The translations under genes were made by a program, and so were the position numbers. The notes beneath the pieces are model-generated. The model made no database searches. It was not told the origin of the DNA and worked only from the letters and a program-made list of their open reading frames with translations. From NCBI GenBank assembly GCA_036785375.1, contig JAWMAR010000388.1, positions 1,798,001-1,862,000 on the forward strand: 64,000 nucleotides of DNA, read 5' to 3'. This document shows positions 5,561 through 55,990 of this stretch, in pieces; positions within the stretch are counted from its first letter, which is position 1, and the number at the start of each line of letters is the position of its first letter. Source of the DNA: Leucoraja ocellata. Taxonomy: Eukaryota.

Positions 5561-5783
5561 TAATAATAATATAATAATAATCTTATTTGTATAGCACATT
5601 TTTAGTCAACTTGCATTGACTCCAAAGTGCTTCACATAATTACATTACATTTACACACAGGCAAAGTGGGTGAAGTGTCTTGCCCCAAGGACACAACGAC
5701 AGTATGCACTCCAAGCGGGATTCGAACCGGCTACCTTCAGGTCGCCAACCGAACACTTAGCCCATTGCGCCATCTGTCGTCCC
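5561..5783 (-). mobile_element. tRNA-derived CORE-type SINE with L2-like tail, inserted in the satellite
   Basis: Minus strand: A box TGGCGCAATGG, B box GGTTCGAATCC, CORE-like GTGTCCTTGGGGCAAGACACTT, tail ...GTGCTATACAAATAAG(ATT)n. Confidence 0.75.
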
Positions 5784-8714: not shown

Positions 8715-8994
8715 GATAAGGGGGAAATCCTTTAAAACCGAGATGAGAAGAACTTTTTTTCACACAGAGAGAGGTGAATCTCTCGAACTCTCTGCCACAG
8801 AGGATAGTTGAGGCCAGTTCATTGGCTATATTTAAGAGGGAGTTAGATGTGGCCCTTGTGGCTAAGGGAATCAGGGGGTATGGAGAGAAGGCAGGTACGG
8901 GATACTGAGTTGGATGATCAGCCATGATCATATTGAATGGCGGTGCAGGCTCGAAGGTACTCCTGCACCTAATTTCTATGTTTCTATGTTTCTA
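8715..8994 (+). mobile_element. 5'-truncated CR1 LINE 3' end
   Basis: Typical CR1 ORF2 end/3'UTR, (TTTCTATG)n tail, candidate TSD TGTAAAG at 8708-8714 and 8995-9001. Confidence 0.9.
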
Positions 8995-11320
8995 TGTAAA
9001 GACTACTAAACACCTGTAAACATCTCTAAACCCCTCTAAGACCCTTTAAACCGCTGTAAACCACTACAAACCCCTCTAAATACCTGTAAACACCAGTAAA
9101 CCCATCTAAAACCATCTAAACCCCTCTAACCCCATCCAAATCCCTCTAAACTGCTCTAACCATCTCCAGGCACCTCCAACCCCCTGCAAACCCCCTCTAC
9201 ATCCCTCCAAAGCTCTCCAAACAACCAAATACAGGGGTTTACAGGGGTTTAAAGCCACCCAACCCCCTGTAAACCCCCTGTAACCCCCTCCAAAGACCTG
9301 TAAAACCCTGTATACCATTGTAAACCCATGTAAACTTTTCTAAACATCTGTAAACCTCTGTAAACATCTCTAAATCCCTCTAAACCACTATAAGCCCCTG
9401 TAAACCCCCTGTAAATGCACCTGAACCCCTCTAAATAATCTAAAACCCTGTTAACCGCTCTAAACCTCTGTGAATCTCTCTAAACCCCACCAAACCTCTC
9501 TAACCGCCTCTACACATCTCTAAACCCCTCCAACCCACTCTAAATCTCTCCAGACCCCTCCAATCCCATCCAAACCTCTCCAAACACCACTAACCCCGTG
9601 TAAACCAGTCTAAACACATAAACTCATCTCAACCTCTCTAAACCCATATAAAGCCCTTTAACCACTCAAAACTCATCTAGACCCCCCTGTAAACCCATGT
9701 AAACCCCCTAACCCCATGTAAAGCTCTATAAACCCCATGTGAACCTCTCTAAAACACTCTAAAGCCGCCCAAATCCCTCTAAACCTCTAAACACCCTTAA
9801 ACCCGTGTAAACCAAACTAAACCCATCTAAACCCCTGTACATCCCTCTAAACCCCTGTAAACACCTGTAAACCTCGGTAAGCCCCGCTAAGCCCCAACGA
9901 AACCCTCTAAAATCCCTCTAAACACCCTATAAAGATCTCTAAGCCCATCTAACCCCGTGTAAACCGCTGAAAAGGCCTGTAAACCCCACGTAAACCAGTC
10001 TAAACACCTGTAAACCTCTCTAAAACCATTTAAACCGCTCTAAACCACTATAAACCTATCTAAATACCTGTAAACACCCGTAAAACATCTAAACCCCTCT
10101 AAACCCATCTAAAACCCTCTAAACCCCTACAATTCACTCTAAACCAATGTAAATCTCTCTAAACCCCTGTAACCCCCTCTAAACCCCTCCAAACCCCTCT
10201 AAACCCCTCCAAACCCATGTAAACCCCTCCAAACCACTCTAAACCCATATAAACCCATCTACACCTTTATAAACACCTGTACACCCCATGTAAACTCCTC
10301 TAAACCATGTGAACCACTCTAAACGCACCTATACCCCATAAAGCAGGCTAAACCCCTCTAAAACCACGTAAAACACCTCTAAACCCATCTAAAACCCCTG
10401 TAAACTCCATGTAAACCCCCCTAAATCCCTGTAAACACCAGGTAAACCCCCCCTTAACCCATGTAAACCACTCTAAACCACTACAACCCTCTGTAAAACC
10501 CTCTAAACCCCTGTAAACCCCATCCAAATCTCTCTACACAGCTATAAAGTACTCTAAACCCCTCAAAACACATCTAAACCTCTGTAGACCCCAAGTAAAC
10601 CCCCCTAAACCCCTCTAAACCCCATGTAAACATATTTAACAACTTCTAAAGCCCTCTAAAGCCGTCTAAACCCCTCTAAACACCTGCACACCTGTAAACC
10701 ACTCTAAACTCATCTAAACACTCTAAACCATTCTAAACGCCTGTAAATCCCTCTAAAGCCTAGTAAATCCCACTAATCCCTCTAAACCCCCTGTAACACC
10801 CCTACACCCCTGTGAACCCTTCCAATCCCCTGTAAGCATCTCTAAAACCCTCTAAACCCCACTAAACCCCTCTAAACCACTCTAAACACCTGTAAACCTC
10901 ATGTAAACCCTTGGAAACCTCTCTTAAAACCCTCCAAACCTCTGTAAACCCCTCTAAACCTCTCTACACATGTAAACACCTGTAAACCCCTTTAAACCGC
11001 TCTAAACCCCGCTAAACCAATCCAAAACCCTCTAAACCACTCTAACCCCCTGTAAATCATTCTAAACCCGCTGTAAACCCATTTAACACCCTCTAAAGCC
11101 GTCAAAACGCCTGTAAACCCATCCAAACCCCTGTAAACCTCTCGAAAACACTCTAAAGCCATCTAAACCCCTCTAAACCTATCTAAACCTCTCTAAACAT
11201 CTGCAATCATCTGTAAACCCATCTTCCATCTAAAACCTCTAAACCCATGTAAACCCCTGTACGCCCCTCTAAACCCCTGTAAATCCCTCTAACCCCCTCT
11301 AAACACCTGTAAACACATGT

Positions 11321-12124: not shown

Positions 12125-13331
12125 CAAAGATCTTATAGCGGAGCAAGATAGGCTACTCCTGCTAAATGCAATGGACTGACGTGTAGTACGCTATGGAGGG
12201 GGATCATGGGCATTTTCCACGCCCATTTTAGCAACCTGAGCCTACCTAACCCGACCCGACTCGCACTGTAATCAATGTTGCGGGGCAACAGTTTGTGTGG
12301 GTCAGATTCATAAATCTGTCAGTTCAAACTTCTTGTCAAGAATAAAATTTGATTCTGGTAATTGTCTTTTTTAATGTTTTTTAAATCATTTCTTTTTAAA
12401 TGGCTCACAAGCAGTGTTTGAGTTGATTTTGTAGTAACCGGAACCGACCGACTCGCAGGGTGATTGACAGGGGGGACTTTTTGTGCGTGATTATAGGGTT
12501 AGATTCATAATTCAATTAGTTCATAATTCTGTTGATTCTTGTTAAGGAATAAAATGTTTATAAACACACATACATGAAAATTATATAAATGTATATAACA
12601 CACACAATTATATTTCTTCTAAACCAATAATGAACTTTATTTCAGACTAGACAAGGGACATTAAATAAGAAACATTGTAAATAAGAAACATTGTCTTGGG
12701 GCACTCTCTCTCCCCGCTGCCCCGGGCCCCGCACTCCTTCTCCCCCGTACTCTCTCTCCCCGCTGCCCCGCACTCTCTCTCCCCGCTGCCCCGGGCCCCG
12801 CACTCCTTCTCCCCCGTACTCTCTCTCCCCGCTGCCCCGTACTCTCTCTCCCCGCTGCCCCGCACTCTCTCTCCCCGCTGCCCCGGGCCCCGCACTCCTT
12901 CTCCCCCGTACTCTCTCTCCCGCTGCCCCGGGCCCCGCACTCTCTCTCCCGCACTCCTTCTCCCCCGCTGCCCCGCACTCCTTCTCCCCGCTGCCCCGGG
13001 CCCCCCACTCTCTCTGCCCGCTGCCCCGCACTCCTTCTCCCCCGCTGCCCCGGGCCCCGCACTCTCTCTCCCCGCACTCCTTCTCCCCGCTGCTCCGGGC
13101 CCCGCACTCTCTCTCCCCGCTGCCCCGGGCCTTGCACTCCTTCTCCACGCTGCGGATCCAATCTTTGGCCGGAAGCAAGAAGGCGGGACCAAGAAAGCGG
13201 TGCAAGATGGCGGAACAAGATGGCGGAGTCAGCTTGCTAATATGTGTCCTGTAATCACCCATGAAACCGCCCATGAGCGTACCTCACGTTTGCGTGAGAG
13301 TAACCTATCTTGCTTCGCTCTAAGATCTTTG
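12125..13331. mobile_element. Non-autonomous TIR DNA transposon (P-superfamily-like MITE), copy 1
   Basis: ~34-bp TIRs CAAAGATCTTATAGCGGAGCAAGATAGGCTACTC; perfect 8-bp TSD GTTGTGAA (12117-12124, 13332-13339); near-empty site in the duplicate at ~15327. Confidence 0.9.
12701..13150. repeat. GC-rich minisatellite inside the MITE (CACTCTCTCTCCCCGCTGCCCCGGGCCCCG-type units)
   Basis: Tandem units; far fewer copies in the second MITE (26235-26348). Confidence 0.9.
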
Positions 13332-13934: not shown

Positions 13935-14935
13935 AGGGAATGAGGAGGGAGAGGGGGAAGAGTGTGGAGGGAGGGGGAGAGTGGGATGGGAGGGGGAGAG
14001 GGGTGGTGGGAGAGAGGGGAAAGACGGAGGGGGGGAGAGAAGTGGAAGAGTGGGGAGGGAGGGAGGGGGGGAGAGGAGTAGCAGGAGTGGTGGAAGAGGG
14101 ACAGGGGGCGTGGTGGAAGAGGGACAGAGGGAAGGGGTGAGGGAGAGGGGAAGGAAGGGGGAGACAGGGGTGGAGGAGGGAGAGGGGTGGGGTAAGGGGA
14201 GAGAAGTGGGAGAGGGAGGGGTAGGGGGAGTGGTGGAAGGGGGCGGGGGAGAGAGGGAAGAGGGTGGGGTAGAGGGAAGAGGTGGGGGAGGGAGGGATGG
14301 GAGAGGGGTGAGGAGAGGGAGAGGGGGAGGAGAGAAGGGGGAGAGCAGTGGACGAGTGGGGAGGGAGGGAAGGGTAGCGGGAGTGGTGGAAGAGGGACAG
14401 AGGGGTAGGGGAAGGGGTGTGACAGGGAGGGGTAGAAAGAGGGGTGAAGGAGGGAGAGGGGTAGGGTAAGGGGAGAGAAGTGGGAGAGGGAGGGGTAGGG
14501 GGAGTGGTGGAAGAGGGACAGAGGGGAAGGGGGCGGGGGAGAGAGGGAAGGGGGTGGGGTAGAGAGGGAAGGGGTGGGGGAGGGAGGGATGGGAGAGGGG
14601 TGAGGAGAGGGAGAGGGGGAGGAGAGAAGGGGAGAGTAGTGGACGAGTGGGGAGGGAGGGAGGGGTAGCGGGATTGGTGGAAGAGGACGGGGAGTGGTGG
14701 AAGAGGGACAGAGGGGTAGGGGAAGGGGTGTGACAGGGAGGGGTAGAAAGAGGGGTGAGGGAGGGAGAGGGGTGGGGTAAGGGGAGAGAAGTGGGAGAGT
14801 GGGGAGGGAGGGGTAGAGGGACTGGTGGAAGAGGGACAGAGTGGTAGGGGAAGGGGCGGGGGGAGAGAGGGAAGGGGGGTGGGGGAGAGAGGGATGGGTG
14901 GGAGAGGGAGAGGGAGAGGGGTGAGGAGAGGGAAA
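13935..14935 (+). repeat. Polypurine G/A-rich low-complexity minisatellite
   Basis: ~1 kb of mostly G/A, with repeated GGAGTGGTGGAAGAGGGACAGAGGG units. Confidence 0.9.
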
Positions 14936-17649: not shown

Positions 17650-20600
17650 TAAACCCCGGTAAACCCCGCTAAGCCCCAGTAAATGCCTGTAAACCCATGT
17701 AGACCCCTCTAGATCCCGGTAAACCCCTATATTGCCCTCTAAAACCATCTACACCCCGTCAACCCCATGTAAACCCCCCCAAACCCCATGTTAACCTCTC
17801 TAAACCCTTCTAAACCCCTCTAAACCCATGTAAACCCCTGTAAAGACCTGTAAACCCCGTGTAAACACCTGGAAACCTCTCTAAAACCCTTGAAACCTCT
17901 GTAAACCCCTCTAAACCTCTCTACACCTGTAAACACCTCTAAACCAAATCCTTCTAAACCTCATGTAAACCCCTGTAAACACCTCTAAACCCATCTAAAG
18001 CCCCCTGTAACCACCATGGAAACTCCCCTAATCCCCTGTAAACCCCACGAAAACCAATACTAAACATCTGTAATCCCCTCTAAATCCATGAAAACCTCTC
18101 TAAACCCCTGTAAACTTCTCTAAACTCGCTAAACCCTTGTAAACCCCTCTAAACCTCTCTACGCCTGTAAACACATGTAAACCCCATGTTAACACCTTTA
18201 AACCCCTGTACACCACTCTAAAACCCTCTAAACACATGTAAACTCCTCTAAACCACGCTAAATCTCTCTAAACACCCGTAAACACATGTAAAGTCATGTA
18301 AACCCATTAAACCCCTCTTAACACATCTAAAACTGTCTAAACCCCCCGCCAACCTCTCCAAACCGCTCTAAACCTCTCCAGACTCCTCCAAACCCCTGAA
18401 CACCCCTCAAAACCACTCCAAGCCCCTCTAAACCGATATAAAGCCATCTACACCCTTACAAACACCTGTATACTACATGTAACCCCCTCTAAACCCTGTG
18501 AACCACTCTAAACACATCTGTACCCCCAATAAAGCCGACTAAACCCGTCTAAAACCATGTAAAATCTCTCAAAACACTAAACCTCTGTAAACCCCATGTA
18601 ATCCCCCGCTAAACCCCTCTAAACCCCCCTGCAAACCTCTTTAACACCCTCTACAGCCATCTAAACCCTTCTAAACCTATCTAAACACCTGCGAACAACT
18701 GTATACCACTCTAAACCCCTCTAAACTCATCTAAAATACTCTAAACCATTCTAAACGCCTGTAAATCTCTCTAAACCCCTGTAATTCGCACTAGCCCATA
18801 AACCCCCTGTAAACCCCATGTAAACCCCCAGAACACATGTACACCCCATGTAAAACCTCTCTACACACATCTAAAACCCCTGTAACCTCCAAGTAAACCC
18901 TCCTAAACGCCTCTAAACCCCGTGTAAACCCATTCAACACCCTCTAAAATTGTCTAAACCCCTCTAAACCTCTCTAAACACATGCAAACACCTGTAAACC
19001 TCTCTAACCCCCTCTAAACTCATCTAAAACACTCTAAACCACTCTAAACGCCTGTAATTCCCTCTAAAGCCCTGTAAATCCCACTAACCTCTCTAAACCC
19101 CCTGTAAACCCCATGTAAACCCCCCTAAACTCATGTAAAACCTTCTAATCCCCTGTAAACATCTCGAAAACCTTCTAAACCCCTCTAAACCTCTCTAAAT
19201 ACCTGTAAACACCTGTGAACACATGTAACTCCCTCCAAACACGTCTAAACCCATCTAAAAACCTCTAAACCCCTCTAAACCCCTGTAAATCCCTCTAAAC
19301 CCCATGTAAATCCCTCTAAACCCCTCCAAACCACTCTAACCCCCTCGAAATTCATCCAAACTGCTTTAAACCTCCTCAAATCCCGGCAAACCCCTCCAAA
19401 GCCCCCCGAACCCATGTAAACCCCTCTAAACTCTCGTGAACCACTCTAAATGCCTCTAAACCGCTACAAGGCCCGGTGAACCTGTCAAAACCCCTGTAAA
19501 GCCCTGTAACACCTATACAGCCCTGCAAATCCCTCTAAACCCATCTAAACCCCCTGTAAACCCCATGTAAACCCACCAAAACCACTGTAAACTCATATAC
19601 CACATGTAAACCACTCTAAACCCTGTAATCCTCGGTACAACCTTCTAAACATCTGTACACACAGGTAAACCCTGTCGAAATTCCTCTAAACACCCTGTAA
19701 ACCTCTCTAAAACCCTCTAAACATCGGTAAACCCCTCTAAACCCCATGTCAACTCCCTAAACACCTGCAAACATTTCTAAAACACTCTAAACACCACTAA
19801 ACACCTCTAAACCACTCTAAACCTCTCTAAATATCTGTAAACACCTGTAAATTCCTCTAAACCGATGTAAATCCCTCTAAACCCCTCCAAACCCCTCTAA
19901 CCACCTCCAAAGCCCTCCAAACCCCTATGAAGCCCTCTAAACCCCCTATAAACACCCTGTAAACCCCATGTAAACCCTTCCAAACCCCTCTAAATCCATC
20001 TAAATCCCCTGTAAACCCCTGTAAGATACTATAACCCCATGTAAACCCACTAAACCCCGGTAAAACCCATGTAAACCTCCCTAAACCACTGTAAACCTCT
20101 CTAAACCCCTATAAAGCCTTGTAAACCCTTCTAATCCCATCTAAACCCCCTGTAAGCACCATGGAAACCCCCATAAACCCCTGTAAACCCCGTGTAAAAC
20201 CCCCTAAACCCTGTAAAGCCTATTAATCCTCTGTAAACATCTTTAAAACCCACCAAACCCCTCTAACCCACTCTAAACCACCAAACCTCTCCAAACCTCT
20301 CCAGACCCCTCCAAACCGCCCCACACCCCTCTAAACCCCTATAACCCCTCCCTGTAAACCTCATGTAAACCCCTCTAAATCCATGTGAACCACTCTAAAC
20401 GCCTATAAACCGCAATGAAGCCCGCAAAAAACCTCTAAACCCATATAAACCTCTCTAAACCCCTATAAAGCCTTGTAAACCATTCTAAACCCATCTAAAC
20501 CCCCAGTAAGCAACATGGAAATCCCCCTAAATCCCTGTAAACCCCGTGTAAAATCCCCTAAACCCCTGTAAACCATTGTAAACGCATGTAAACCTCTCTA

Positions 20601-22635
20601 AACATCCCTAACCCCTGTAAACAACTCTAAATCCCTCTAAACCACTACAAGCCCTTGTACACCCCCTGTAAATGCATCTGAACCCCCCTAAACACCTCTA
20701 AACCCCGGTAACCGCTCTAAACCCCTGTGAACCTCTCTAAACCACTCCAAACCTCTCTAAACCTCCTGTAAACCCATGTAGAACCCCTAAACCCCTGTAA
20801 ACCTCTCTAAACCCCTCTAAAGCCGTCTAAACCCCCCTCTAAACACCCGCAATCATCTGTAAACCCCTCTAAACCCATCTAAAACGCTCTAAACCCATCT
20901 GAACCCCTGTAAATCCCTCTAAACACTTGTAATCCCTGGTAAACCTCGCTAAGCCCCAATAAACGCCTGTAAACCCCTTTAGATCCCTGTAACCCCCTCT
21001 AAACCTCTATAAACACCCTATAAAGACCTCTAAACCCATCTATACCCAAGTAAACACCTGTAAAGACCTGTAAACCCCACGTAAACCCGTCTAAACACCT
21101 GTAAACCCTCTAAAACCCTGTAAAGCCTACTCAACAGCTGAAAACATCTCTAAACCTCTAAGACCCTTTAACCCGCTCTAAACCACGCTAAACCTCTCTA
21201 AATACATGTAAACACCCGTAAACACCTGTAAAACGCGCTAAACCCCTGTAAATCTCTCTAAACCCCTCCAAACTGCTCTAAACCTCTCCATACACCCCCA
21301 AACACCATGCAAACCCCCTCTAAATCCCTTCAAAGCCCTTCAAAGACCCCGCAAATCCCCAGTAAACGCCGGTAAACCCCTTTAGATCCCTGTAAACCCC
21401 TCTAAACTCATGTAAACCTCTCTAAAACCCTCTAAACCCCCTGTAAACCATACTAAATCTCGCTACACCTGTAAATCCCTCTCCACCTGTAAACACCTGT
21501 AAACCCCTATAAACCTCTCTAAAACCCTCTAAACACGTGTAAACCCCTCGAAACCCCTGTAAAGCCTACTAAACACCTGTAAATATCTCTAAAACCCTCT
21601 AAACCATTTAAACCGTTCTAAACCCCTCTAAACCCATCTAAAACCCTCCGAACCACTCTAACCCCCTCCAAATCCCTCCAAACTGCTCTAAACTGCACTA
21701 AACCTCTCCAGAGACCTCCAAACTCCTGCAAGCCCCCTCTACATCCATCCAAAGCCCTCCAAAGCCAACCAAACACATATAAAGCCATCTAACCCCCCAT
21801 AACACCCTGTAAACCCCATGTAAACCAACCTAAACCGCAGTTAGTTACTCGAGACGTCTCTAAACCCTTATAAAGCCCGCTAAACCCCTTAAAACCCCAT
21901 GTAAACACCATGTAAACCCCCAAAACCACTGGAAACTCCTCTCAACCCTTGTAAACCTGTTAATCTCTCTAAAACCGTCTAAGCACCTATAAACACGCGT
22001 AACCCCTATGTAAACCCCTCTAATCCCCTGTAAACCTCTCTAAAACACCCTAAACGCCTGTAAACCACTATAAACCTCTGTAAACCCCTCTAATCCCCTC
22101 TAAACACATATAAAACCCACTAAACCCCTCAAAACCCATCTACCCCCCCAAACCCCGTAAACCCATGTAAACATCTCTAAACAACTATAAAAGCCCTCTA
22201 AACCCCTAAAAACCCATCAAAACATCTGTAAACACGTAAACCCCCTAACCCCCTGTAAATCCTTTAAACCCATATAAACCCCTGTACATACCTCTGAACC
22301 GCTGTACATCCCTCTAACCTCATCTAAACACCTCTAAACACTTGTAAACCCCGGTAAACCCCGCTAAGCCCCAGTAAACGCCAGTAAACCCCTCTAGATC
22401 CCTGTAAACCTCTGTAAACCTATCTAAACACACCATATATACCTCTAAACCCCTCTAAACCCCTGGAAACCCCTCTAAAACCATCGAAACCTCTGTAAAC
22501 CCCTCTAAACCTATAAACACCTGCAAACCCCTTGAAACCTCTCTAAACCCCCTAAAACGCCCTCTAAACCCCAGTAGGCCCATCTAAACCCCGTGTATAC
22601 CCCATGTAGGCCCCCTTAAACCCCTGTAAACCCCC
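17650..22635. repeat. Continuation of the ~10-bp TAAACCCCTC satellite
   Basis: Same unit and orientation as 1-11320. Confidence 0.95.
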
Positions 22636-38735: not shown

Positions 38736-39039
38736 CTGCAAAGCAAAGGCCACATGAATGTTAACCTCTCTCTCTCTCTCTTGTCTATTTCATGCAACTT
38801 CACCTGAGTATCACACACTATTAGTTAATCACTCCGCCTTGATCCCACCTTGGAAAACATTGGCTGAAAACGTCTTGGGTGCCAATATCTGGCAGTTACT
38901 GCCAAATGTACGCACAATTTCGAGTTGGAAATATATCGATAGGCCTCCAGTATTAATTACTGTAAAATTCCCAGCATTTCTCAGGAATGCTCAATGGCTA
39001 TAACTAACGTTGGCGTATGTGTTACAATCTCACCAAACT

Positions 39040-39500
39040 TCTTGTTGCGACTGGGGATGATGGAGCAAGGGCGGATCTACGGGATACAGTGTAGACACGT
39101 GTGAGAGTCTCGTCTATTGTAAAAGTGGAGAATACCCGCTCTCTAAAGAATGAGGACCTCGGATATCCTGGGATGGAACAACTCATCTTGGGAGCAGTTG
39201 CACGGAGATGGATGAATTTGGGAATAGGACATACAGTCTTTGCAGGAGGCAAGGTTGGAAGAGGTGTAGTCCTGATAGCTGTGTGAGTCCGTAGATTTGT
39301 CATTTACGTCAGTCGATAGTCTATCTCCTGCGATGGAGACGGTGAGATCAACAAAGGGGAGGTATGTGTCGGGGATAGACCCGGGGAATTTGATCGTACG
39401 GTCAAAGTTTGTAGACAATGAAGTCGATGAGTTCTGCATGGGTACAAGAGGAAGAGTTCGGGGAATCGGCCAGTCTGTGTCAGGGGTTGTCCCGTGTACC
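39040..39500 (-). mobile_element. Penelope-like element RT fragment in the J-Cmu intron
   Basis: PFVDLTVSIAGDRLSTDVNDKSTDSHSY motif. Confidence 0.8.
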
Positions 39501-39535
39501 CAACTAAATGGAAATTGGTGAATGAAATGATGTGC

Positions 39536-41041
39536 AATGTTGGAAACAACATTTTCTCTGCTATTTGAATCGAACAGTTATCCCACTAATCCGTGAACAG
39601 AGTGGGAATTGAAATCAATGGTTCAAACGAGGGGTTGACTGACGTTCAAAATTACATTTGCATTTATTTAATTAAAATTAAATAATTTTGGTAGGTTTCG
39701 CTTGGGCCACTGAGAGGGCCCGTGGCTAAACTTTTGATTTGAAGGAAGAGGGAAGAGTTTTTGTCATAAATGGTTCAGAGATTATCCGATAAAATCAGAA
39801 ACAATGGAAGGATGGCTGTGGTTTTCCACATCGGGTCCCGAACATAATTTGGGAGAAGACAAAAAATAAACAATCACAATCTTGTTCGTGTAATTTGGCC
39901 TTAAATGTGTCCATCGAACGAAACCAACTAAGGGGGTGAATGGGATTGAAATGGTAGCGACAAATAACACACTTCAAATGTTACTTTTTAACTGTATTTT
40001 GTTGTCCCATCACTCACGAAAATATACCGATCATTTCTATGTCGACCGTAATTGCAAGGACATTCCAAAAAGCAAACCAGCCGGCAAGAACATTACATTC
40101 ATACCAGATTAAAAACATGTATGAGATTGCATTGGTAAGGATTAAAAAGAACTCCCTCAATATAATATCTGAATTAGTAAAGGTTATGTACCACAACTTC
40201 TGGAAACTAAATGTAGCATATAAATTGTAACAACATGTTAATACTTCGTAATTAAATAAATTGGCACATGTTTCAAATGTTTGTCTGTGTACATCATTGC
40301 CTCAATGAATTCAATAATAATCAATTAAAATTAATGTTGATGCAATTCAGTTCAGTTTCCAGCATCTTTAAAACGAGTTTACGTTTACAATGTGATCGGC
40401 ACGGAAGAACGAATGATTAACATTGTATCACTGTGTTTAAGAAGGAACTGCAGATGCTGGAAAATCGAAGGTACACAAAAAAGCTGGAGAAACTCAGCGG
40501 GTGCAGCAACATCTACGGAGCGAAGGAAAAGGGCAACGTTTCGGGCCGAACCCCTTCTTCAGACGGGTTTGTATCATTGTAAACATTGTATCACTGTCCG
40601 ATAGGAAACGAATATCAAATATACCAATTATAAATTATAACCTGCAATCTATTAAAACAATATCTGAGTTTGCTTCGTGACTTTAACAGGAAAAGGCTTT
40701 CATTCATATAGATGAAGTTTACTTAGAATAGTGAAAATGCACAATGTTGCTAAATCAATGTCTTAATTAAATAAATGCAAATGTAAATTTGAACGCCACT
40801 CAAACCCTCCTTTAAGCCATGGATTTCAATTCGCACTCTGTTCAATGATTAATGGGATACCCTGTTTTGTAATTAAAATTAAGATAGCGGAGTCAGGGGA
40901 TATGGGGAGAAGGCAGGAAAGGGGACTGATTGGGGAAGATCAGCCATCACATTAAATGGCGGTGCTGGCTCGAAGGACCGAATGGCCTCTACTCCTGCAC
41001 CTATTGTCTAAATTAGCAGAGAAAATTCCGTTTCCAACATT
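39536..41041. promoter_or_regulatory. Inverted pair of ~140-150-bp elements, each with a perfect octamer (39656-39663, 40775-40782); candidate intronic enhancer
   Basis: 39536-39675 is the reverse complement of 40763-41041 once a CR1 tail insert (~40881-41009) is removed; the enhancer role is inferred. Confidence 0.5.
40435..40565 (-). mobile_element. Penelope-like terminal-repeat fragment with 16-bp flanking duplication
   Basis: AACATTGTATCACTGT at 40419-40434 and 40582-40597. Confidence 0.75.
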
Positions 41042-42900
41042 CCATTTTTCCCAATTTCTCTTTTTTTTTACCGCAACTATTCGTAAAACGGACATTTTTC
41101 ATTAGCAATTCAGTAGAGGAACATTTTGTTTAAATGACATTTGGAGCCATAGACAAACACGAATTCAAATTCGCTTTCTAATAAATCCACGGATTACAAA
41201 TTATTCAAGAACTGCATCCCCCGTTTTACATTCAACGCATTTTCCAAATGGGAAAACTCGTGATCTTTGACATAAAACAGAGAAATGGGTCATTGGGTTA
41301 GGCAGCATTTGTGGAAAGAGGAAAGCAAGCATTTGCCAGGTCGACTATCGTTGGGAGAATAAACCATGGCGAATTCAGTTTCGATTAGAGATATAGCATA
41401 GAAATAGATCCTTCTGCCAACCAAATCCACGGCGACACACAAGTTCTACGTTATCTCACCCCCGACCCACCCGGGTCAATCACCCGGGTCAATTAACCTG
41501 CAAACCTGCACTCTTTTGGGTTGTGGGAGGAAAGCAGAGAACCAGTAACAAACCGCAGGGAGAACGCACAGTTCTCAGTCTGCACCTGATTTCAGGAACG
41601 AAGTCGTGTCTCTGGCGCTACCAGCTGTCATTCGGCTCCCCTCTATGGGATTTGTCTTTCGCCACAGGCTGCGTGACCCTCTAGGTGTTTGCAACATTTA
41701 CTCTTCCTATTTATGATTTCTAATAATTTCTTGTTATTTTTATTTTTAAACATATATCTTCTTTGCGTTTATTGAAATAACCGAATCGGACACTTCATAC
41801 AACAGCAATACCCGGTCCTGCCAATCGAATGGAACGTACAAACACGTCCAATTGCGCACCAAATATCGTCTCCCACAATGACCGGCTGAATCATACCGCC
41901 GATGGGATCAATCGCTTAACACAAATTTGCTGAAACTCTTCACAAAAATCCAAATATCTCTGTCCAAAGACCACCGATATTCATTGTTCCATTGACCACC
42001 GAGCCAATCATTGTTGAAATAACGAGGAATAACACAATACACGTGGATTACATAGATAACATTTCCATATAATGTGAATTTCATTCAGTTCCTCCGTCAC
42101 GCTAGTTCCTCTGTCCCCTATTACACCCGGTACATTGTCATTCTGTAGATCGCGTTTCACGGACTTTGCTTTCTTAGCTTTGCTGTATCATTGGTTCACA
42201 TGGCCAACTCATTGTACTTCAAGATAGACACAAAAAGTTGTAGTAACTCAGCGGGAGAAGCAGAGTTACTCCAGCTTTGTGTCAATCGGCAACATAAATC
42301 AGCATCCACAGTTCCTCCCTATTCATTGTACTTCAAGATATATAACTGACGCTGAACCTTGCTGTCTGTGTTTTGCTGCAAGAAATGTTTACTTCTTCCA
42401 TGCAAGTTTTGTTAGCGATTGGATTAAAGTTGGCAAGGTGATTCCACCAATTAATACATACACTTTAAAAACTTGAACATTTTACACCCAGGATTTATCC
42501 GTTTGTGTCGTTTGTTTCATATGCGCTGAGAAGAAACAAACTGAGACAAAGTACCTGCTGTTGATCAGAAAATACAGTTCGATGCATCGCAGATCAAGGA
42601 CCACAACAATCTCAAACAATTAGAAAGCCTAGTGAAAGCAAATTGATGCACATTTTCCCAGTAATTAGGAACTTAAACCGAATCCGTTTCATAGTCAAAG
42701 GATCGAAAGTCATAGCACACAAGGCAAGTTTAAATCGTGAATCTTGCAGCGGAATCACATAACATTTTAAAGCAACATCGATCCAACATTGCAATGAATG
42801 GGTAATTAATGTAGAGGAACAATTTAATATGATTATTGGAAATATCGAGTAAAATTACAACTGGATACATCTAGATACTGAATAGGATGAAGTTTCTTAC

Positions 42901-42950
42901 CGTTGGTTACCGTCAACATGGTGCCTCCTCCCCAGTAGTCATGATAGTAA
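42901..42950 (-). CDS. IGHJ: JH segment (YYHDYWGGGTMLTVTN)
   Basis: WGxG motif; gtaag donor in phase with Cmu1; flanked by a 23-RSS. Confidence 0.97.
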
Positions 42951-42989
42951 CACAGTGTTACATTCTATGGGCTGCCTCACACAATAACA
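42951..42989 (+). other. 23-RSS of JH
   Basis: CACAGTG (42951-42957) + 23 nt + ACAATAACA (42981-42989). Confidence 0.93.
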
Positions 42990-43314
42990 TGATCTGCACA
43001 AGGTAGGCAAAAAAAAAAAATTCCTGTAATTATTCGTATTTCACATCGAAAGCGAATGACTTATTGCTCTTTGAAAACAATGAATGCGTTAAATAAATCA
43101 TTTCCAACAATAATCAGATACCACGGCTCCGTGTATTAAACAGGGCAGTGAAATGTGATAAGAATTATCTACATATAAAATACAAATTACTTCAAGTTAC
43201 CTATACAACAAAATGTGCGAAAATATCCCTGGACATGTTTATGCTCTTGTTGTATGAAATATTGAATTGAAAATATCATATACTGGCCCAGACCACCGTA
43301 TTATGGGTTGTGGA

Positions 43315-43342
43315 TGTTTTTGTATTGGTAGGAACCGCTGTG
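43315..43342 (-). other. 12-RSS at the 3' end of the fused V-D segment
   Basis: CACAGCG + GTTCCTACCAAT (12 nt) + ACAAAAACA. Confidence 0.93.
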
Positions 43343-43668
43343 TACAATATAGTTCCATTGGGCCCTCGCACAGTAATAGACAGCCGTGTCTTCGATCTTC
43401 AGGCTGCTGGCCGTCACGATGAAGATATTATTCGTATAGTCTTTGGACGGAGTAAATCGGCTCTCTATCCCCGGAGGGAAGTACTTGGTGTAAGTAGAAC
43501 CGTAGTAGGTAAGCAGCCACTCCAGCCCCTGCCCGGGGACCTGGCGGACCAAAGCCATCCAGTAGCTGCCAACACTGAACCCGCTGACTTTACAGGTCAG
43601 TGTGATGGAGCCTCCAGGAGTGGCCGTCTCTGTCTTGGGCTGGGTTAGAACGATATCGGAATGGACGC
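43343..43668 (-). CDS. IGHV: VH exon fused in frame to D-like sequence ([39 protein letters not shown]...[12 protein letters not shown])
   Basis: tgcag acceptor, both V-domain Cys, [13 protein letters not shown]; 21 extra nt before the heptamer. Confidence 0.95.
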
Positions 43669-43840
43669 CTGCAAGTTAAAAACAAGGCATGAATGGCGAG
43701 GATAAAATATTGACCATTGATCCCGACTCTAATTATCAAGAGGAAATAATTGGGACGGTTCTAGAGTGGGTAGAAGGGGAATGGTGTAGTGGATACACCA
43801 CTGTGAAACTTGCGTGGGGAATTTGTCCAACATCACTCAC

Positions 43841-43886
43841 GGACTATTAACGCCAGGAACAAACTCAGTGAAACCGCCGACCTCAT
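43841..43886 (-). CDS. IGHV: VH leader exon (MRSAVSLSLFLALIV)
   Basis: 46-nt hydrophobic signal exon, gtgagt donor in phase with the V exon. Confidence 0.93.
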
Positions 43887-43976
43887 CCCGCTGGGAAGTG
43901 TGACCCTGTTGTTTCTGTACAGAACCTCGCAACAAACCAACTGCAAGGAAGTTGGATTTCGGCCCCTCTTAGAGAG

Positions 43977-44046
43977 AATTAAATACCCGGCAAAAGAGGG
44001 CGCGGCTGTGGGCGGGACTTGTAAACCGAGTGGTGCAGCGGGCGGA
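43977..44046 (-). promoter_or_regulatory. Candidate VH promoter: TATTTAA box and two GC boxes, no proximal octamer
   Basis: TATTTAA at 43979-43985 (minus strand); GGGCGG at 44010-44015 and 44040-44045. Confidence 0.55.
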
Positions 44047-44101
44047 GCTGAAACACGGCCCCCAACTCAACAGCAACATGGACTCACGCTATCACATCTA
44101 T

Positions 44102-44733
44102 TAGACACATAGAAACATAGAAAATAGGTGCAGGAGTAGGCCATTCGGCCCTTCGAGCCTGCACCGCCATTCAATATGATCATGGCTGATCATCCAACTC
44201 GGTATCCTGTACCTGCCTTCTCTCCATATCCCCTGATACATTTAGCCATAAGGACCACATCTAACTCCCTCTTAAATATAGCCAATGAACTGGCCTCAAC
44301 TACCTTCTGTGGCAGAGAATTCCAGAGATTGACCACTCTCTGTGTGAAAAAGGTTTTCCTCATCTCAGTCCTAAGAGTTCCCCCTTATCCTTAAACTGTG
44401 ACCACTTGTTCGGAACTTCCCCAACATCGGGAACAATCTTCCTGCATCTAGCTTGTCCAACCCCTTAAGAATCTTGTAATTTTCTATAAGATCCCCCCTC
44501 AATCTTCTAAATTCTAGCGAGTACAAGCCGAGTCTATCCAGTCTTTCTTCATATGAGTCCTGACATCCCAGGAATCAGTCTGGTGAACCTTCTCTGTATT
44601 CCCTCTATGGCAAGAATGTCTTTCCTCAGATTAGGAGACCAAAACTGTACGCAATACTCCAGGTGTGGTCTCAGCAAGACCCTGTACAACTGCAGTAGAA
44701 CCTCCCTGCTCCTATACTCAATTCCTTTTGCTA
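44102..44733 (-). mobile_element. CR1 3' fragment ~215 bp upstream of the VH ATG
   Basis: AGAAACAT tail and CR1 ORF2 C-terminal sequence. Confidence 0.9.
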
Positions 44734-44809
44734 TATATTGCTTATATTTTGCTTATATTGTGTAAGGGGCGGAAAAGCACGCTGTTTTATTAACCTCTTG
44801 TGCATCTGT

Positions 44810-45243
44810 ATCAGCAAGGAGCATTCGTAATAAGGTGGATGAGTTGAATGTGCGGATAGCTATTAATGACTATGATATAGTTGGGATCACAGAGACATGG
44901 CTCCAGGGTGACCAAGGCTGGGAGCTGAACATCCAGGGATATTCAATATTCAGGAGGGATAGACAGAAAGGAAAAGGAGGCGGGGTAGCGTTGCTGGCTA
45001 GAGAGGAGATTAACGCAATAGAAAGGAAGGACATTTGCTGGGAGGATGTGGAATTATATGGGTAGAGCTGCGAAACACTAAGGGGCAGAAAACGCTAGTG
45101 GGAGTTGTGTACAGGCCACCTAACAGTAGTAGTGGAGTTGGGGATGGCATCAGACAGGAAATTAGAAATGAGTGCAACAAAGGTAAAACAGTTATAATGG
45201 GTGACTTCAATCTACATATAGATTGGGTGAATCAAATTGCCAT
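44810..45243 (+). mobile_element. CR1 ORF2 APE endonuclease fragment
   Basis: DIVGITETWL, GGGVAL, VVYRPPN, IMGDFN. Confidence 0.88.
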
Positions 45244-45249
45244 AACTGC

Positions 45250-47423
45250 ACTATGAGACGAGGGACGTAAAGCGGTGGTCCGACCAGTCAGAGGCCATGC
45301 TGCAAGATGCACTGAGTGAAGTCGACTGGAATATGTTCGAAGCAAGTTCCAGTGACGTCAGTGAGTTCGCGGAAGCAGTCACGGACTTCATCGCAACAGT
45401 AACCGACAACATCGTCCCCACGGTAAGGGTAAGCACCTTTCCGAACCAAAAACCCTGGGTAGACAGGTCTGTTCATGTGGCCGTGAATGCTCGTACCGCT
45501 GCCTACAACTCGGGCTTGGCATCAGGAAACATGGACGTCTACAAGGCAGAGTCCTACCGACTGCGAAGGGCGGTGAAGGACGCAAAGAGAAGGTACAGGG
45601 ACAAGATGGAGTTACAGATGGAGCAGCAGGACACCAGAAGCCTGTGGCAGGGGTTACGGATTGTAACCAACTACCGGAGCACCCCTTCCTCATCCGCAGG
45701 TGCCGGCACCTCCCTAGCTGACGACCTGAACTCCTTTTACGCTCGTTTCGAGAGGGGCAACACCACTCCAGGTCTGCCGACTATCGACAATACCGCCAGC
45801 GGGCTGGCTAACGAGGCTGAAGGGAGGAATGTGCACACATTCTCGCAGTCTGAGCATGACGTGAGGAGGGCACTGACATGGGTGAACACGAGAAAAGCTG
45901 CAGGCCCCGATGGCATCTCGGGGCGAGTACTCAAGTCCTGTGCTACGTAGCTAGCTCCAGTGCTGACTACATTATTCAACCTCTCCCTGGACAAGTCCGT
46001 GGTCCCTGCCTGCTTCAAAAAATCCATCATTGTACCGGTACCAAAAAATGCCTCCCCAGCCTGTCTGAATGACTACCGTCCGGTGGCCCTTACCTCGGTA
46101 GTCATGAAATGCTTTGAGAGGCTGGTGAAGAATCACATCTGCGCCTTCCTCCCTCGGAACATGGACCCGTTGTAGTTCCCATACCGTCCGAACAGATCCA
46201 CGGACGATGTGGTCTCCCAGGTCTTGCACACCGCTCTCTCCCATCTGGACAGCCAGAAGGGGGGCTACGTGAGGATGCTGTTCATAGACTACAGTTCAGC
46301 CTTCAACACGATAGTCCCCACCAGACTGGCCGGGATGCTAATGGAATTGGGCTTCAACACCTCCCTGTGTGCCTGGGTCCTGGACTTTCTCACCGCCAGG
46401 CCCCAGGTAGTCAAGATGGGAGGGAATACATCAGAGTCCCTCACCCTGAGCACAGGATCGCCCCAGGGTTGCGTCCTCAGCCCCCTATTGTACTCCCTGT
46501 ACACACATGACTGTGTGGCTAGGTTCAGCTCCAATTCAATAATTAAGTTTGCTGATGACACTGTGGTGGTGGGCCTGATCTCAGACAACGACGAGAAGGT
46601 GGCTGATCTAGCACTCTGATGCCAGGATAACAGCCTCCTCTTGAACATCAAAAAAACGAAGGAGCTGATCATGGACTTTAGGAGGGCACATCATCCGAGG
46701 ACGTACACTCCATTGAGGATAAATGGGGATCCTGTGGATAGGGTGAACTGTTTTAAATATCTGGGAGTCCACATCTCCGAGGATATGACATGGGCATCAC
46801 ACGCCTCAGCACTCGTGAGTAAGGCAAGGCAGCGCCTTTACCACCTCAGGCAATTGAGGAAATTCAGAGTGTCTCCGAGGATCCTCCAGTGCTTCTACGC
46901 AGCGGCGGTGGAAAGCATCTTGTGCGGGAACATTACCATCTGGTTTGGGAATTGCTCTGCCAAGGACAAGAAGGCTCTGCAGAGAGTAGTGCGTTCGGCC
47001 GAACGCACTATGGGAACTTCACTCGCCCCCCTGCAGGAACTATACAACAGGAGGTGCAACTCCAGAGCAAATAAAATCATGGGAGACCCCTTCCACCCCT
47101 GCAACGGACTGTTCCAGCTGCTACGGTCAGGCAAACGCCTCCGTTGCCATGCGGTGAGAACGGAGAGGTTGAGAAGGAGTTTCTTCCCAGAGGCAATTCG
47201 GACTGTAAATGCCTATCTCACCAGGGACTAACTCTACTGAACGTTTTTCCTTCCATTATTTATTATGTAAAAGAATATGTGTGTTATGATTGTGTTTATA
47301 ATTTGTTTGGTTGTTTTGTTGTCTGTCTTTTGCATAAAAGTCCGCGAGCATTGCCACTTTCATTTCACTGCACATCTCGTATGTGTATGTGACAAATAAA
47401 CTTGACTTGACTTGACTTGACTT
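45250..47423 (+). mobile_element. Rex1/Babar LINE, 5'-truncated, with in-frame stops
   Basis: [37 protein letters not shown]; stops at 45948, 46173, 46617; (CTTGA)n tail. Confidence 0.92.
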
Positions 47424-48443: not shown

Positions 48444-51400
48444 AGAAACATAGAGGAAACATAGAAAAATATGTGCAGGAGTAGGTCATTCGGCCCTTCG
48501 AACAGGGACCATTCAACATAATCATGGCTGATCATTTAAATTCAGTACCCCATTCCTTCTGTTTCCCCATATCCCTTGATTCCATGTCCTAAGAGCTAAA
48601 TCTAACTCCGTCTTGAAAAGATCGAGTGAATTGGCCTCCGCTGCCTTCTGTGGCAGAGATTTCCACAGATTCATAACTCTCTGGGTGAATTTTTTAATCC
48701 TCATTTCAGTCCTACATGGCCTATCCCTTATTCTTAAACTGTGACCCCTGGTTCTGGACTCCCCCAACGTCGGGAACATTGTTCCTGCATCTAGCCTCTC
48801 AGTCCCGCCATCCCGGGAATTATCCTGGTGAACCTATGCTGCACTCCCTCAATAGCAATAATGTCCTTCCTGAAATTTGGAGACCAAAATTGCACACAAT
48901 ACTCCAGGTGTGGTCTCACCTGGGCCCTGTACAACTGCCAGAAGGACCTCCTTGCTCCGAAACTCAAATCCTCTCACAATGAAGGCCAACATGCCATTCG
49001 CTTTCTTCACTGCCTGCTGTACCTGCATGCTTATTCAGTGACTGATGTACAAACACACCTAGGTCTCGTTGCACCTCCCCTTTTCCAAATCTGACAGCAT
49101 TCAGATAATAAACTACCTTCCTGTTCTTGCCAATAAAGTGGATAACCTCACATGTATCCCCATTATACGGCATCTGCCATGCATCTGTCTTATTTTAAGT
49201 CACCTTGCAGCCTCATAACATCCTCATCGCAGCCCCCATTGCCATATAAACCATATAATATAAACCATATAACAATTACAGCATGGAAACAGGCCATCTC
49301 GACCCTTCTAGTCCGTGCCGAACACATAATCTCCCCTAGTCCCATATACCTGCGCTCAGACCATAACCCTCCATTCCCTTCCCATCCATATAACTATCCA
49401 ATTTATTTTTAAATGATAAAAACGAACCTGCCTCCACCACCTTCACTGGAAGCTCATTCCACACAGCTACCACTCTCTGAGTAAAGAAGTTCCCCCTCAT
49501 GTTACCCCTAAACTTCAGTCCCTTAATTCTCATGTCATGTCCCCTTGTTTGAATCTTCCCTACTCTCAGTGGGAAAAGCTTTTCCACGTCAACTCTGTCT
49601 ATCCCTCTCATCATTTTAAAAACCTCTATCAAGTCCCCCCTTAACCTTCTGCACTCCAAAGAATAAAGCCCTAACTTGTTCAACCTTTCTCTGTAACTTA
49701 GTTGCTGAAACCCAGGCAACATTCTAGTAAATCTCCTCTGTACCCTCTCTATTTTGTTGACATCCTTCCTATAATTAGGCGACCAAAATTGTACAACATA
49801 CTCCAGAATTGGCCTCACCAATGCCTTGTACAATTTTAACATTACATCCCAACTTCTATACTCAATGCTCTGATTTATAAAGGCCAGCACACCAAAAGCT
49901 TTCTTTACCACTCTATCTACATGAGATTCCACTTTCAGGGAACTGTGCACAGTTATTCCCAGATCCCTCTGTTCACCTACATTCTTCAATTCCCTACCAT
50001 TTACCATGTACGTCCTATTTTGATTTGTCCTGCCAAGATGTAGCACCTCACACTTATCAGCATTAAACTCCATCTGCCATCTTTCAGCCCACTCTTCCAA
50101 CTGGCATAAATCTCTCTGTAGACTTTGAAACTCTACTTCATTACCCGCAACCCCACCTATCTTAGTATCATCTGCATACTTACTAATCCAATTTACCACA
50201 CCATCATCCAGATCATTGATGTACATGACAAACAACAGTGGACCCAACACAGATCCCTGTGGCACCCCACTCGTCACTGGCCTCCAACCTGACAAACAAC
50301 CATCCACAATTACTCTCTGGCATCTCCCATTCAGCCACTGTTGAATCCATCTTGCTACACCATTAATACCCAACCATTGAACCTTCTTAACCAACCTTCC
50401 ATGAGGAACCTTGTCAAAGGCCTTACTGAAGTCCATATACACAACATCCACTGCGTTACCCTCATCAATTTCCCGTGTAACATCTTCAAAAAATTCAAGA
50501 AGATTAGTTAAACAAGACCTTCCAGGCACAAATCCATGTTGACTGTTCCTAATCAGACCCTGTTTATCCAGATGCTTATATATATTATCTCTAAGTATTC
50601 TTTCCATTAATTTGCCCACCACTGACGTCAAACTAACAGGTCTATAATTGCTAGGTTTACTCTTAGACCCCTTTTTAAACAATGGAACAACATGCGCAGT
50701 ACGCCAATCCCCCGGCACTATTCCCATTTCTAATGACACTTGAAATATTTCTGCCATAGCCCCTGCTATTTCTACACTAACTTCCCTCAATGTCCTAGGG
50801 AATATCCTGTCCGGACCTGGAGACTTATCCACTTTTATATTTCTCAAAAGTGTCAGTACTTCCTCTTCTTTGAATCTCATAGTTTCCATAGCTACTCTAC
50901 TTGTTTCCCTTACCTCACATAATTCAATATCCTTCTCCTTGGTGAATACCGAAGAAAAGAAACTGTTCAATATCTCCCCCATCTCTTTTGGCTCTGCAGA
51001 TAGTTGTCCACTCTGACTCTCTAATGGACCAATTTTATCCCTCGTTATCCTTTTGCTATTAATATAGCGGTAGAAACCCTTCGGATTTACTTTTACCTTA
51101 CTTGCCAAAGCAACCTCATATCTTCTTTTAGCTTTTCTAATTTCTTTCTTAAGATTCTTTTTACATTCTTTATACTCCTCAAACACCTCATTTACTCCAT
51201 GCTGCCTATAATTATTGTAGATCTCCCTCTTTTTCCGAACCAAGTGTCCAATTTCCCTTGAAAACCATGGCTCTTTACAATTTTTACGATTTCCTTTCAA
51301 CCGAACAGGGACATACAGATTCTGTACTCTTAAAATTTCACCATCCAGCTTTGTCTCATCCATAGACTTACCTTGGAAATTACATATTTAATTCCCTCGT

Positions 51401-53088: not shown

Positions 53089-55990
53089 AGATTCAGATTC
53101 AGATTCAGATTCAATTTTAATTGTCATTGTCAGTGTACAGTACAGAGACAACGAAATGCATTTAGCATCTCCCTGGAAGAGCGACATAGCAAACGATTTG
53201 AATAAATAATAATAAGTGTCCGGGGGGGGGGGGGGGGGTGGTGATTGGCAGTCACCGAGGTACGTTGTTGAGTAGAGTGACAGCCGCCGGAAAGAAGCTG
53301 TTCCTCGACCTGCTGGTTCGGCAACGGAGAGACCTGTAGCGCCTCCCAGATGGTAGGAGGGTAAACAGTCCATGGTTGGGGTGAGAGCAGTCCTTGGCGA
53401 TGCTGAGCACCCTCCGCAGACAGCGCTTGCTTTGGACAGACTCAATGGAGGGGAGCGAGGAACCGGTGATGCGTTGGGCAATTTTCACCATCCTCTGCAA
53501 TGCCTTCCGGTCGGAGACAGAGCAGTTGCCATACCATACTGTGATGCAGTTGGTAAGGATGCTCTCGATGGTGCAGCGGTAGAAGTTCACCAGGATCTGA
53601 GGAGACAGATGGACCTTCTTCAGTCTCCTCAGGAAGAAGAGACGCTGGTGAGCCTCCTTGATCAGAGTAGAGGTATTGTGGGTCCAAGAGAGGTCATCGG
53701 AGATGTTGACTCCCAGGAACCTGAAGCTAGAAACACGTTCCACCTCCATCCCGTTAATGTGGATGGGGGTGTGCGTGCCGCCTCTGGACTTCCTGAAGTC
53801 TACAATGAGCTCCTTGGTCTTCTTGGAGTTAAGGGCCAGGTTGTTGTCAGCGCACCATGCTGCTAAGTGCTGGACCTCCTCCCTGTAGGCCAGCTCATCG
53901 TTGTTGCTGATGAGGCCAATCACCGTTGTATCATCTGCATACTTGATGATGGTGTTAGTACCATGTACAGGTGTGCAGTCATAGGTGAAGAGGGAGTAGA
54001 GGAGGGGGCTCAGCACACAGCCCTGTGGAACGCCGGTGTTCAGGGTGAGGGTTGAAGAGGTGTGCTTGTCTAACCTCACAGGCTGGGGTCTGTTGGTTAG
54101 AAAGTCCAGTATCCAGTTGCAGAGGGAGGGGTCGATGCCCAGGTTACCAAGTTTGGTGATCAGTTTTGATGGTATAATGGTGTTGAATGCTGAGCTGTAA
54201 TCGATGAACAGCATTCTTACGTAAGTGGCTCTGTTGTCGAGGTGAGAGAGGGCGGAGTGAAGTGCCGTTGAGATGGCATCCTCCGTACTCCTGTTCTTGC
54301 GGTAGGCAAACTGATAGGGATCCAGTGTGGGGGGTAGGCAGCTTTTGAGGTGTGCCAGGACCAGCCTCTCGAAGCACTTGGTGATGATGGGGGTAAGTGC
54401 AACTGGGCGGAAGTCGTTGAGGCTTGCCGCAGTGGAGTGTTTTGGCACTGGCACGATGGAGGTGGTTTTAAGGCAAGTGGGGACAACTGCTTGGGCAAGC
54501 GACAGGTTGAAGATGTCAGTCCAGACGTCTGTCAGCTGCGCAGCACAGGCCCTGAGCACGCGCCCGGGGATGCCGTCAGGGCCAGCAGCTTTACGTGCAT
54601 TAGTCCTACTCAGTGCCATGTATACGTCGTAGGGGGTGAGTGTGAGCGGTTGGTGATCGGCAGGTAGCACAGCCTTGATGGCTGTCTCTAGATTGTCCCT
54701 GTCGAAGCGGCCATAGAAGTGATTAAGCTCCTCAAGGAAGGAGGCGTCGCTGGATGTGGGGGTGATGTTGGAGGGTCTGTAGTCCGTGATGGCCTGGATG
54801 CCTTGCCACTTGCGTCGGGGGTCGGAGTTGTTGTAGAAGTGCTCCTCAATCCTGAGCTTATGGCAGTGCTTGGCCTTCCTGATGCCCTTCTTCAGGTTAG
54901 CCCTGGATGAACTGTAGGCTCGAGCATCGCCTGACCTGAAAGCGGTGTCCCGTGCTTTCAGCAGTAGCCTGACCTCGCTGTTCATCCATGGCTACTGATT
55001 CGGGTATATGGTCACCTGTTTGAGGGAGGTGACACTATTGATGGTGGAGTTTATAAAGTCCAGAACAGAGGATGTGTAGGAATCAATGTCCGTGTGGGAG
55101 TCAAGGGTGGCCTGGGCTGCAAATGCCTTCCAGTCAGTGTTTCCAAAACACTGCTGAAGTGTGAAGTCCGCTTCCTTTGACCAGACTTTAACTGTCCTCA
55201 CAGTTGGTTTAACCCGTCTGATGAGTGGGGAGTACTTAGGGAGCAGGAACAATGAGACGTGATCAGACTGACCAAGGTGGGGGAGGGGGATGGCTTTCTA
55301 AGCTTCAGCCATGTTGGTGTAGACTTTGTCCAGTGTCTTGTCTACTCTAGTGGGGAAGGATACATGTTGGTGGAATTTGGGGAGTACAGTCTTCAGGTTA
55401 GAGTGATTGAAGTCACCCGCACCAATGAAGGCTGCCTCGGGGTTGTGAGTCTGTTGATTGCTAATGGCAGTATGCAGCTCTTTCATTGCAAGCTTGGCAT
55501 TAGCGTCAGGAGGGATATAGGCTGCAGTCACAACAGTGGAGGTGAACTCTCTGGGCAGATAGAACGGTCTGCATCTAACCAAGAGGAACTCAAGGTTAGC
55601 TGAGCAGTGACTCTCGATGATGGTGGAGTCCGTGCACCATGCTTTATTTACATAAATGCACAGACCCCCACCTCTGGTCTTACCAGAGTCTGATGTCCTG
55701 TCCGCTCGGAGTAAATGACGCCCCGATAGCTGGATGGCGCTGTCAGGAACGTCAGTGTTGAGCCAAGTTTCCGTGAAAATCAGGATGTTGCAGTCCTTGA
55801 TCCGGTTGTGGGAGGTGATCCTTAGCCGGAGTTCATCCATTTTGTTTGTCAGTGAATGCAGGTTGGCGAGGAAAAGGCTAGGAATCGCTGCCCTGTGTGG
55901 GGCTAGCTCTAACCTGGCCTTTAACCCACCTCTGCGTCCCCGGCGGTGTTTTCGTACCCGTCGCCGTCTGTTGGTGCTTCTGGTGGGCCG
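53089..55990 (-). mobile_element. Near-complete Rex1/Babar LINE (APE + RT), with lesions at ~54990 and ~55255-55300
   Basis: 577-aa RT ORF with YADD; upstream APE motifs FTETWL, GGGLCIY, GDFN; (GAATCT)n tail; inserted in a CR1 fragment. Confidence 0.93.

Follow-up and report, generated by a model that had tools for sequence, protein, structure and literature searches.

A probable partially germline-joined VD(D)-J IgM heavy-chain minilocus in Leucoraja ocellata

Layout of the IgM locus

The window analysed here is a stretch of 64,000 nucleotides of Leucoraja ocellata DNA (GenBank assembly GCA_036785375.1, contig JAWMAR010000388.1, positions 1,798,001 to 1,862,000 of the forward strand), and all coordinates below are counted from its first letter. 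On its minus strand, between 31624 and 43886, lie a leader, a VH, a JH, Cmu1-4 with a secretory tail and a TM1 exon, all in the same orientation. These features, the two RSSs between VH and JH, and the transposon block upstream are as follows.

44105-47300, no strand assigned: transposon block, a high-copy short element with plus-strand LINE reverse-transcriptase ORFs after it; ends approximate
43841-43886, minus strand: leader exon 1, ATG at 43886-43884, 15 codons plus 1 nt, encoding MRSAVSLSLFLALIV; GT donor at 43840
43669-43840, minus strand: leader intron, 172 nt, GT..AG
43364-43668, minus strand: VH exon up to and including the Cys-Ala-Arg codons; Pfam V-set, E=3.5e-13
43343-43363, minus strand: 21 in-frame nt after Cys-Ala-Arg (AQWNYIV), a presumed D2 remnant with or without D1 and added nucleotides
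43315-43342, minus strand: 12-RSS, heptamer 6/7, 12-bp spacer, nonamer 8/9
42990-43314, minus strand: intergenic stretch of 325 bp, D-less by RSS and heptamer scan
42951-42989, minus strand: 23-RSS of JH, heptamer 7/7, 23-bp spacer, nonamer 7/9
42901-42950, minus strand: JH, 50 nt, encoding YYHDYWGGGTMLTVTN, with a W-G-x-G motif; GT donor at 42900
38439-38735, minus strand: Cmu1 exon, open, AG/GT sites; C1-set, E=1.3e-10
36751-37068, minus strand: Cmu2 exon, open, AG/GT sites; C1-set, E=2.3e-19
36006-36308, minus strand: Cmu3 exon, open, AG/GT sites; C1-set, E=3.9e-10
34518-34909, minus strand: Cmu4 exon with secretory tail, stop at 34520-34518; C1-set, E=1.3e-20
31624-31751, minus strand: TM1 exon, open, AG/GT sites

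The constant-region exons downstream of JH are all open, their phases match and their splice sites are canonical; a donor for the membrane form (GGTAAA) lies inside Cmu4 at about 34580. Pfam and homologue searches were run with the exons queried singly, the joined spliced model being left out. The best named match of the VH exon is a VH of Heterodontus francisci (63% identity), followed by sequences of Chiloscyllium (59-61%) and Rhincodon (58%), and the leader resembles that of horned shark VH P0001, with which it aligns. For Cmu4 the identities are 67% with a Chiloscyllium fragment, 56% with Callorhinchus IgH and 80% with one further fragment. When each exon was used as a tblastn query, no second Ig gene was found in the 64-kb window, nor was there a further copy of the V-J region within it. 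We consider that the locus is most probably a single elasmobranch IgM heavy-chain minilocus in a partially germline-joined VD(D)-J configuration. The intron between Cmu4 and TM1 (32449-34243) is AT-rich (GC 0.24) and holds three of the five N runs in the window.

The V end, its RSS and the proposed joining

A VH normally bears a 23-RSS, and the spacers of an unrearranged elasmobranch IgM cluster follow the order V-23, 12-D1-23, 12-D2-12, 23-J. At this locus the V exon, read from 43668, runs for 108 stop-free codons (43666-43343), in which the Cys-Ala-Arg codons (43372-43364) are followed by 21 extra in-frame nt (43363-43343) that directly abut a 12-RSS made up of the heptamer CACAGCG (43342-43336), a spacer (43335-43324) and the nonamer ACAAAAACA (43323-43315). 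The JH bears a 23-RSS whose nonamer (42989-42981) is separated by a 23-bp spacer from a perfect heptamer (42957-42951). A strict scan, which required at least 14 of 16 consensus positions and a spacer of exactly 12 or 23, returned two RSSs in the whole 64-kb window, both at the V-J of this gene; block-shuffled sequences (n=200) contained a mean of 0.075 such RSSs, and one of the 200 reached two. A loose scan of both strands gave 18 matches in 64 kb, this pair being the only one within 42000-44100. At the V end the strict scan found no 23-RSS, since at 43342 only the 12-bp reading passes.

The two RSSs are convergent on one strand, 12/23-compatible and oriented for deletion, so that a single RAG step would complete the gene, and we infer that RAG can use the pair today. 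Free D segments were sought between V and J as heptamer pairs flanking 5-44 nt, of which 43335-42958 contains none, and the 325-bp intergenic stretch has no consensus heptamer at all. These results bear out an initial annotation of the same DNA, which had placed 21 in-frame nt and a 12-RSS after Cys-Ala-Arg (its coordinates, both RSSs and its 325-bp figure all proved correct on reading), had found neither a 23-RSS at the V end nor a free D before JH, and had concluded that one RAG step is left, as the deletional pair, the sole strong RSSs in 64 kb, would allow. From coding end to coding end, VD and JH are 392 bp apart; this gap fits one inter-segment distance of the nurse shark clusters, whose segments are spaced by about 400 bp according to a passage in PMC2435157.

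With a 12-RSS after 21 in-frame nt, no D, and the spacing of one segment interval, the simplest reading is a V-D fusion. The 21 nt are presumed, from the 12-RSS that adjoins them, to derive from one or more D segments. A palindrome, GGGCCC (43365-43360), spans the presumed V end and may represent P nucleotides from a hairpin; because we roughly estimate its chance of occurring there at 1 in 10, we give it little weight.

In the history that we propose, RAG would have acted in the germ line to fuse the VH to the D segment or segments of its own cluster, deleting the 23-RSS of V, the inner RSSs flanking the Ds, and the V-D and D-D spacers, while the 3' 12-RSS of the last D would have been retained, facing the 23-RSS of JH. 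The join is likely to be germline rather than somatic. A single deletional 12/23 join in a lymphocyte would then yield a complete V exon, with variability confined to the D-J joint. A blunt D-J join, as had been pointed out and as can be read from the sequence, is out of frame and runs into a stop; an in-frame product would require a net loss of 1 nt or a net gain of 2 nt.

Clusters of this kind have been known since 1988, and the locus is an ordinary further case. Horned shark VD-J and VDD-J clusters are attributed to Kokubu et al. 1988 in passages of PMC2193156 and PMC4279169; heavy-chain clusters with partial joining, some of them VDD-joined, figure in passages of PMC2193156, PMC4279169 and PMC5192425, in line with the annotation's statement that germline-joined clusters occur in sharks and skates; and the latter two trace such joining, whether partial (VD-J) or complete (VDJ), to RAG in germ cells. 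Like the Heterodontus francisci clusters as portrayed there, the present locus would be an IgM cluster with V and D fused in inherited DNA, J separate and one RAG step left; unlike them, it belongs to another species, has a divergent VH, carries a Leu in FR2 and has transposons abutting its promoter. Chicken pseudo-VH genes, which serve as gene-conversion donors, resemble it in that a passage of PMC2193156 describes a germline-fused VD and ascribes it to germ-cell RAG, but they are said there to be without a leader, an RSS and a C gene of their own, all three of which the present cluster has.

RAG action on the germ line leaves its clearest trace in germline-joined antibody genes, and these are also candidates for innate-like, pre-determined receptors. 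A chromosome-scale catalogue of joined and split clusters could show how frequently joining occurs, whether joined clusters are later duplicated and whether selection on them continues. To such a catalogue this locus would contribute one well-defined entry with a possible sign of decay, leaving existing knowledge unchanged.

Functional state of the copy

The Trp of FR2 is a hallmark residue of the V domain and belongs, in IMGT usage, to the criteria for a functional IGHV, together with Cys23, a hydrophobic residue 89 and Cys104. In this VH, FR2 reads ...YWMALVRQ..., with a Leu (TTG, 43552-43550) at a position that is Trp in 14 of 14 aligned homologues. Across 19 columns in each of which 90% or more of the homologues agree, this replacement is the sole deviation within the V exon; a second deviation falls in a leader column, outside the query. 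Both hallmark cysteines (Cys23 and Cys104) are present, and residue 41 is not Trp. An allele or an error in the sequencing could account for the Leu.

An octamer forms part of the VH promoter in elasmobranchs, and an octamer/TATA promoter near the leader also counts towards a functional IGHV. Allowing up to one mismatch and either orientation, we found none in 43886-44400, the roughly 515 bp upstream of the ATG, although a TATA-like run lies near 43985. The transposon block starts about 220 bp upstream of the ATG, with its LINE ORFs at 45297-47231. Exact octamers number seven in the window, against about 2.4 expected by chance; on the strand of the gene, the closest of them upstream is at 47652-47645. 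We rejected this octamer as a displaced promoter, because it would still be over 500 bp away from the ATG if the transposons were subtracted and because some octamers are expected in any such window by chance.

The initial annotation had described the rest of the gene as intact. This holds for the Cmu gene, which is open and canonically spliced; it is called into question by the Trp-to-Leu replacement in the FR2 of the V domain and by the upstream region, whose first 515 bp or so have no octamer and contain transposon sequence. Because of the FR2 replacement, the missing octamer and the transposons beside the promoter, we lean somewhat towards a decaying or poorly functional copy over a semi-invariant antibody gene in working order. 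The near-consensus RSSs and the openness of all exons count against a long decay.

The same open exons, canonical splice sites and near-consensus RSSs would suit a working one-step IgM gene under selection, with a semi-invariant, germline-encoded CDR3 and perhaps a use in early life, a reading that we entertain tentatively and hold to be the less probable. Its precedent, by analogy, would be the nurse shark IgM1gj, which in passages of PMC4279169 and PMC5192425 is likewise an IgM-class cluster whose CDR3 is germline-encoded and is proposed to act early in life; IgM1gj is described there as fully joined, RAG-independent and without Cmu2, whereas the present cluster needs a D-J join and has four Cmu exons. 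The FR2 Leu, the octamer-free upstream region and the nearby transposon all speak against a working gene, as does a passage in Lee et al. (PMC2193156) according to which the horned shark H genes that are joined or partially joined were not found to be expressed. A further, weak point comes from mapping 38300-44100 at 90% likeness in three DNA runs from three studies (X1, X2 and X3) and one RNA run (X24): in X24, of which about 5% was read, depth was 0 over 42374-44100 and 0-0.46 over Cmu1. Since X24 thus holds almost no IgM of any kind, it is uninformative on the expression of this gene.

A broader version of the working-gene reading, which we think unlikely, would trace this cluster and putative VD(D)-J siblings on the same contig to one germline joining and would see in them a subfamily of one-step IgM genes that was kept, with a CDR3 mostly encoded in the germ line and with the FR2 Leu tolerated or compensated. 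If true, the subfamily would provide an innate-like heavy chain when RAG or TdT is limiting, as in the embryo or neonate.

Alternatives for the joint, read coverage and neighbouring repeats

In one alternative the 21 nt would not stem from a D: a VH with an extended 3' end would have come to carry a 12-RSS, for instance through an 11-bp deletion in its spacer, or the cluster would never have contained D segments. We judge this very improbable. Three homologues end at the V end, two of them stopping at Cys-Ala-Arg and the third one residue later, and the remaining homologues run on into other sequence; besides the 12-bp reading, the only RSS reading at 43342 is a weak 22-bp one (heptamer 6/7, nonamer 6/9, from the loose scan); and the V-J spacing equals one inter-segment distance. 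Fusion of V to D is the reading that we retain.

The germline status of this V-D fusion was considered against DNA reads. A run search for 42880-43900 returned 20 rows from 8 studies, none recorded as RNA; the best share of sampled words in any run was 0.47, and none reached half. In X1, X2 and X3, 30 of 30 bins of 38300-44100 were covered, the V, RSS and J bins among them. Depth over 42762-43731 was 10.7-33.3 in X1, 573-1061 in X2 and 235-660 in X3, and the longest pieces listed for these runs had depths of about 7-12, 175-300 and 160-370, respectively, which marks the region as low-copy DNA in these samples. Among the pieces listed, a set crowded with high-copy repeats of the J-C intron, none bridges 43343/43342, and the nearest span 42873-43158. 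The exact 37-nt junction pattern occurred in 0 metagenome contigs.

The lack of a bridging piece among those listed and the best word share of 0.47 would be compatible with a join that is somatic (a VDD-J intermediate of a lymphocyte) or an assembly mis-join, the true germline being split as V-D1-D2-J, and VDD-J intermediates, with V-D1-D2 joined and J unjoined in the configuration presumed here, are often encountered in the lymphoid DNA (lymphocytes and thymocytes) of the nurse shark according to a passage in PMC2435157; but those intermediates are described as arising per cell and in lymphoid DNA only, whereas the present join stands in a genome assembly and is presumably inherited, the consensus of an assembly should not come from one lymphocyte clone, 21 extra in-frame nt would not be expected from a mis-join at shared heptamers, and V, RSS, intergenic stretch and J have depths of low-copy order in the three DNA runs, those of X1 being 10.7-33.3 against 8.7-12.4 for its listed pieces, so that we regard this explanation as highly improbable.

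Two differences between the assembly and the reads were seen elsewhere in the gene. In each of X1, X2 and X3 a contig skips 163 bp within 40418-40582 in the J-C intron, reflecting either an indel polymorphism or a difference between paralogues. At 38576-38600 in Cmu1, the sole contigs mapped there, one in each of X1, X2 and X3, share six differences in 25 bp, the most likely source being a paralogous Cmu1 and not this locus.

The J-Cmu1 intron contains two exact octamers in opposite orientation, at 39656-39663 (minus) and 40775-40782 (plus). Pieces of the short, high-copy interspersed element lie in the same intron (40434-41015 and 42180-42373) and at about 44105-44750; its summed contig depths reach 10^5-10^6 in the three DNA runs, and X24 contains it in abundance. 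Upstream of the cluster, two further long LINE reverse-transcriptase ORFs occupy 49336-51363 (minus, 675 aa) and 53252-54985 (minus, 577 aa), possibly from recently active elements. On the 3' side of the IgM gene, degenerate arrays of a 10-nt unit, with the plus-strand consensus TAAACCCCTC, extend over 3-11314 (about 1126 copies) and 17650-22634 (about 496 copies); their GC skew is about -0.7, so that they are G-rich on the strand of the gene. A purine-rich block of GGGAGG-type repeats (GC 0.585, skew +0.55) lies beside a C-rich 23/69-nt tandem repeat (13945-14933 and 12701-13153, respectively).
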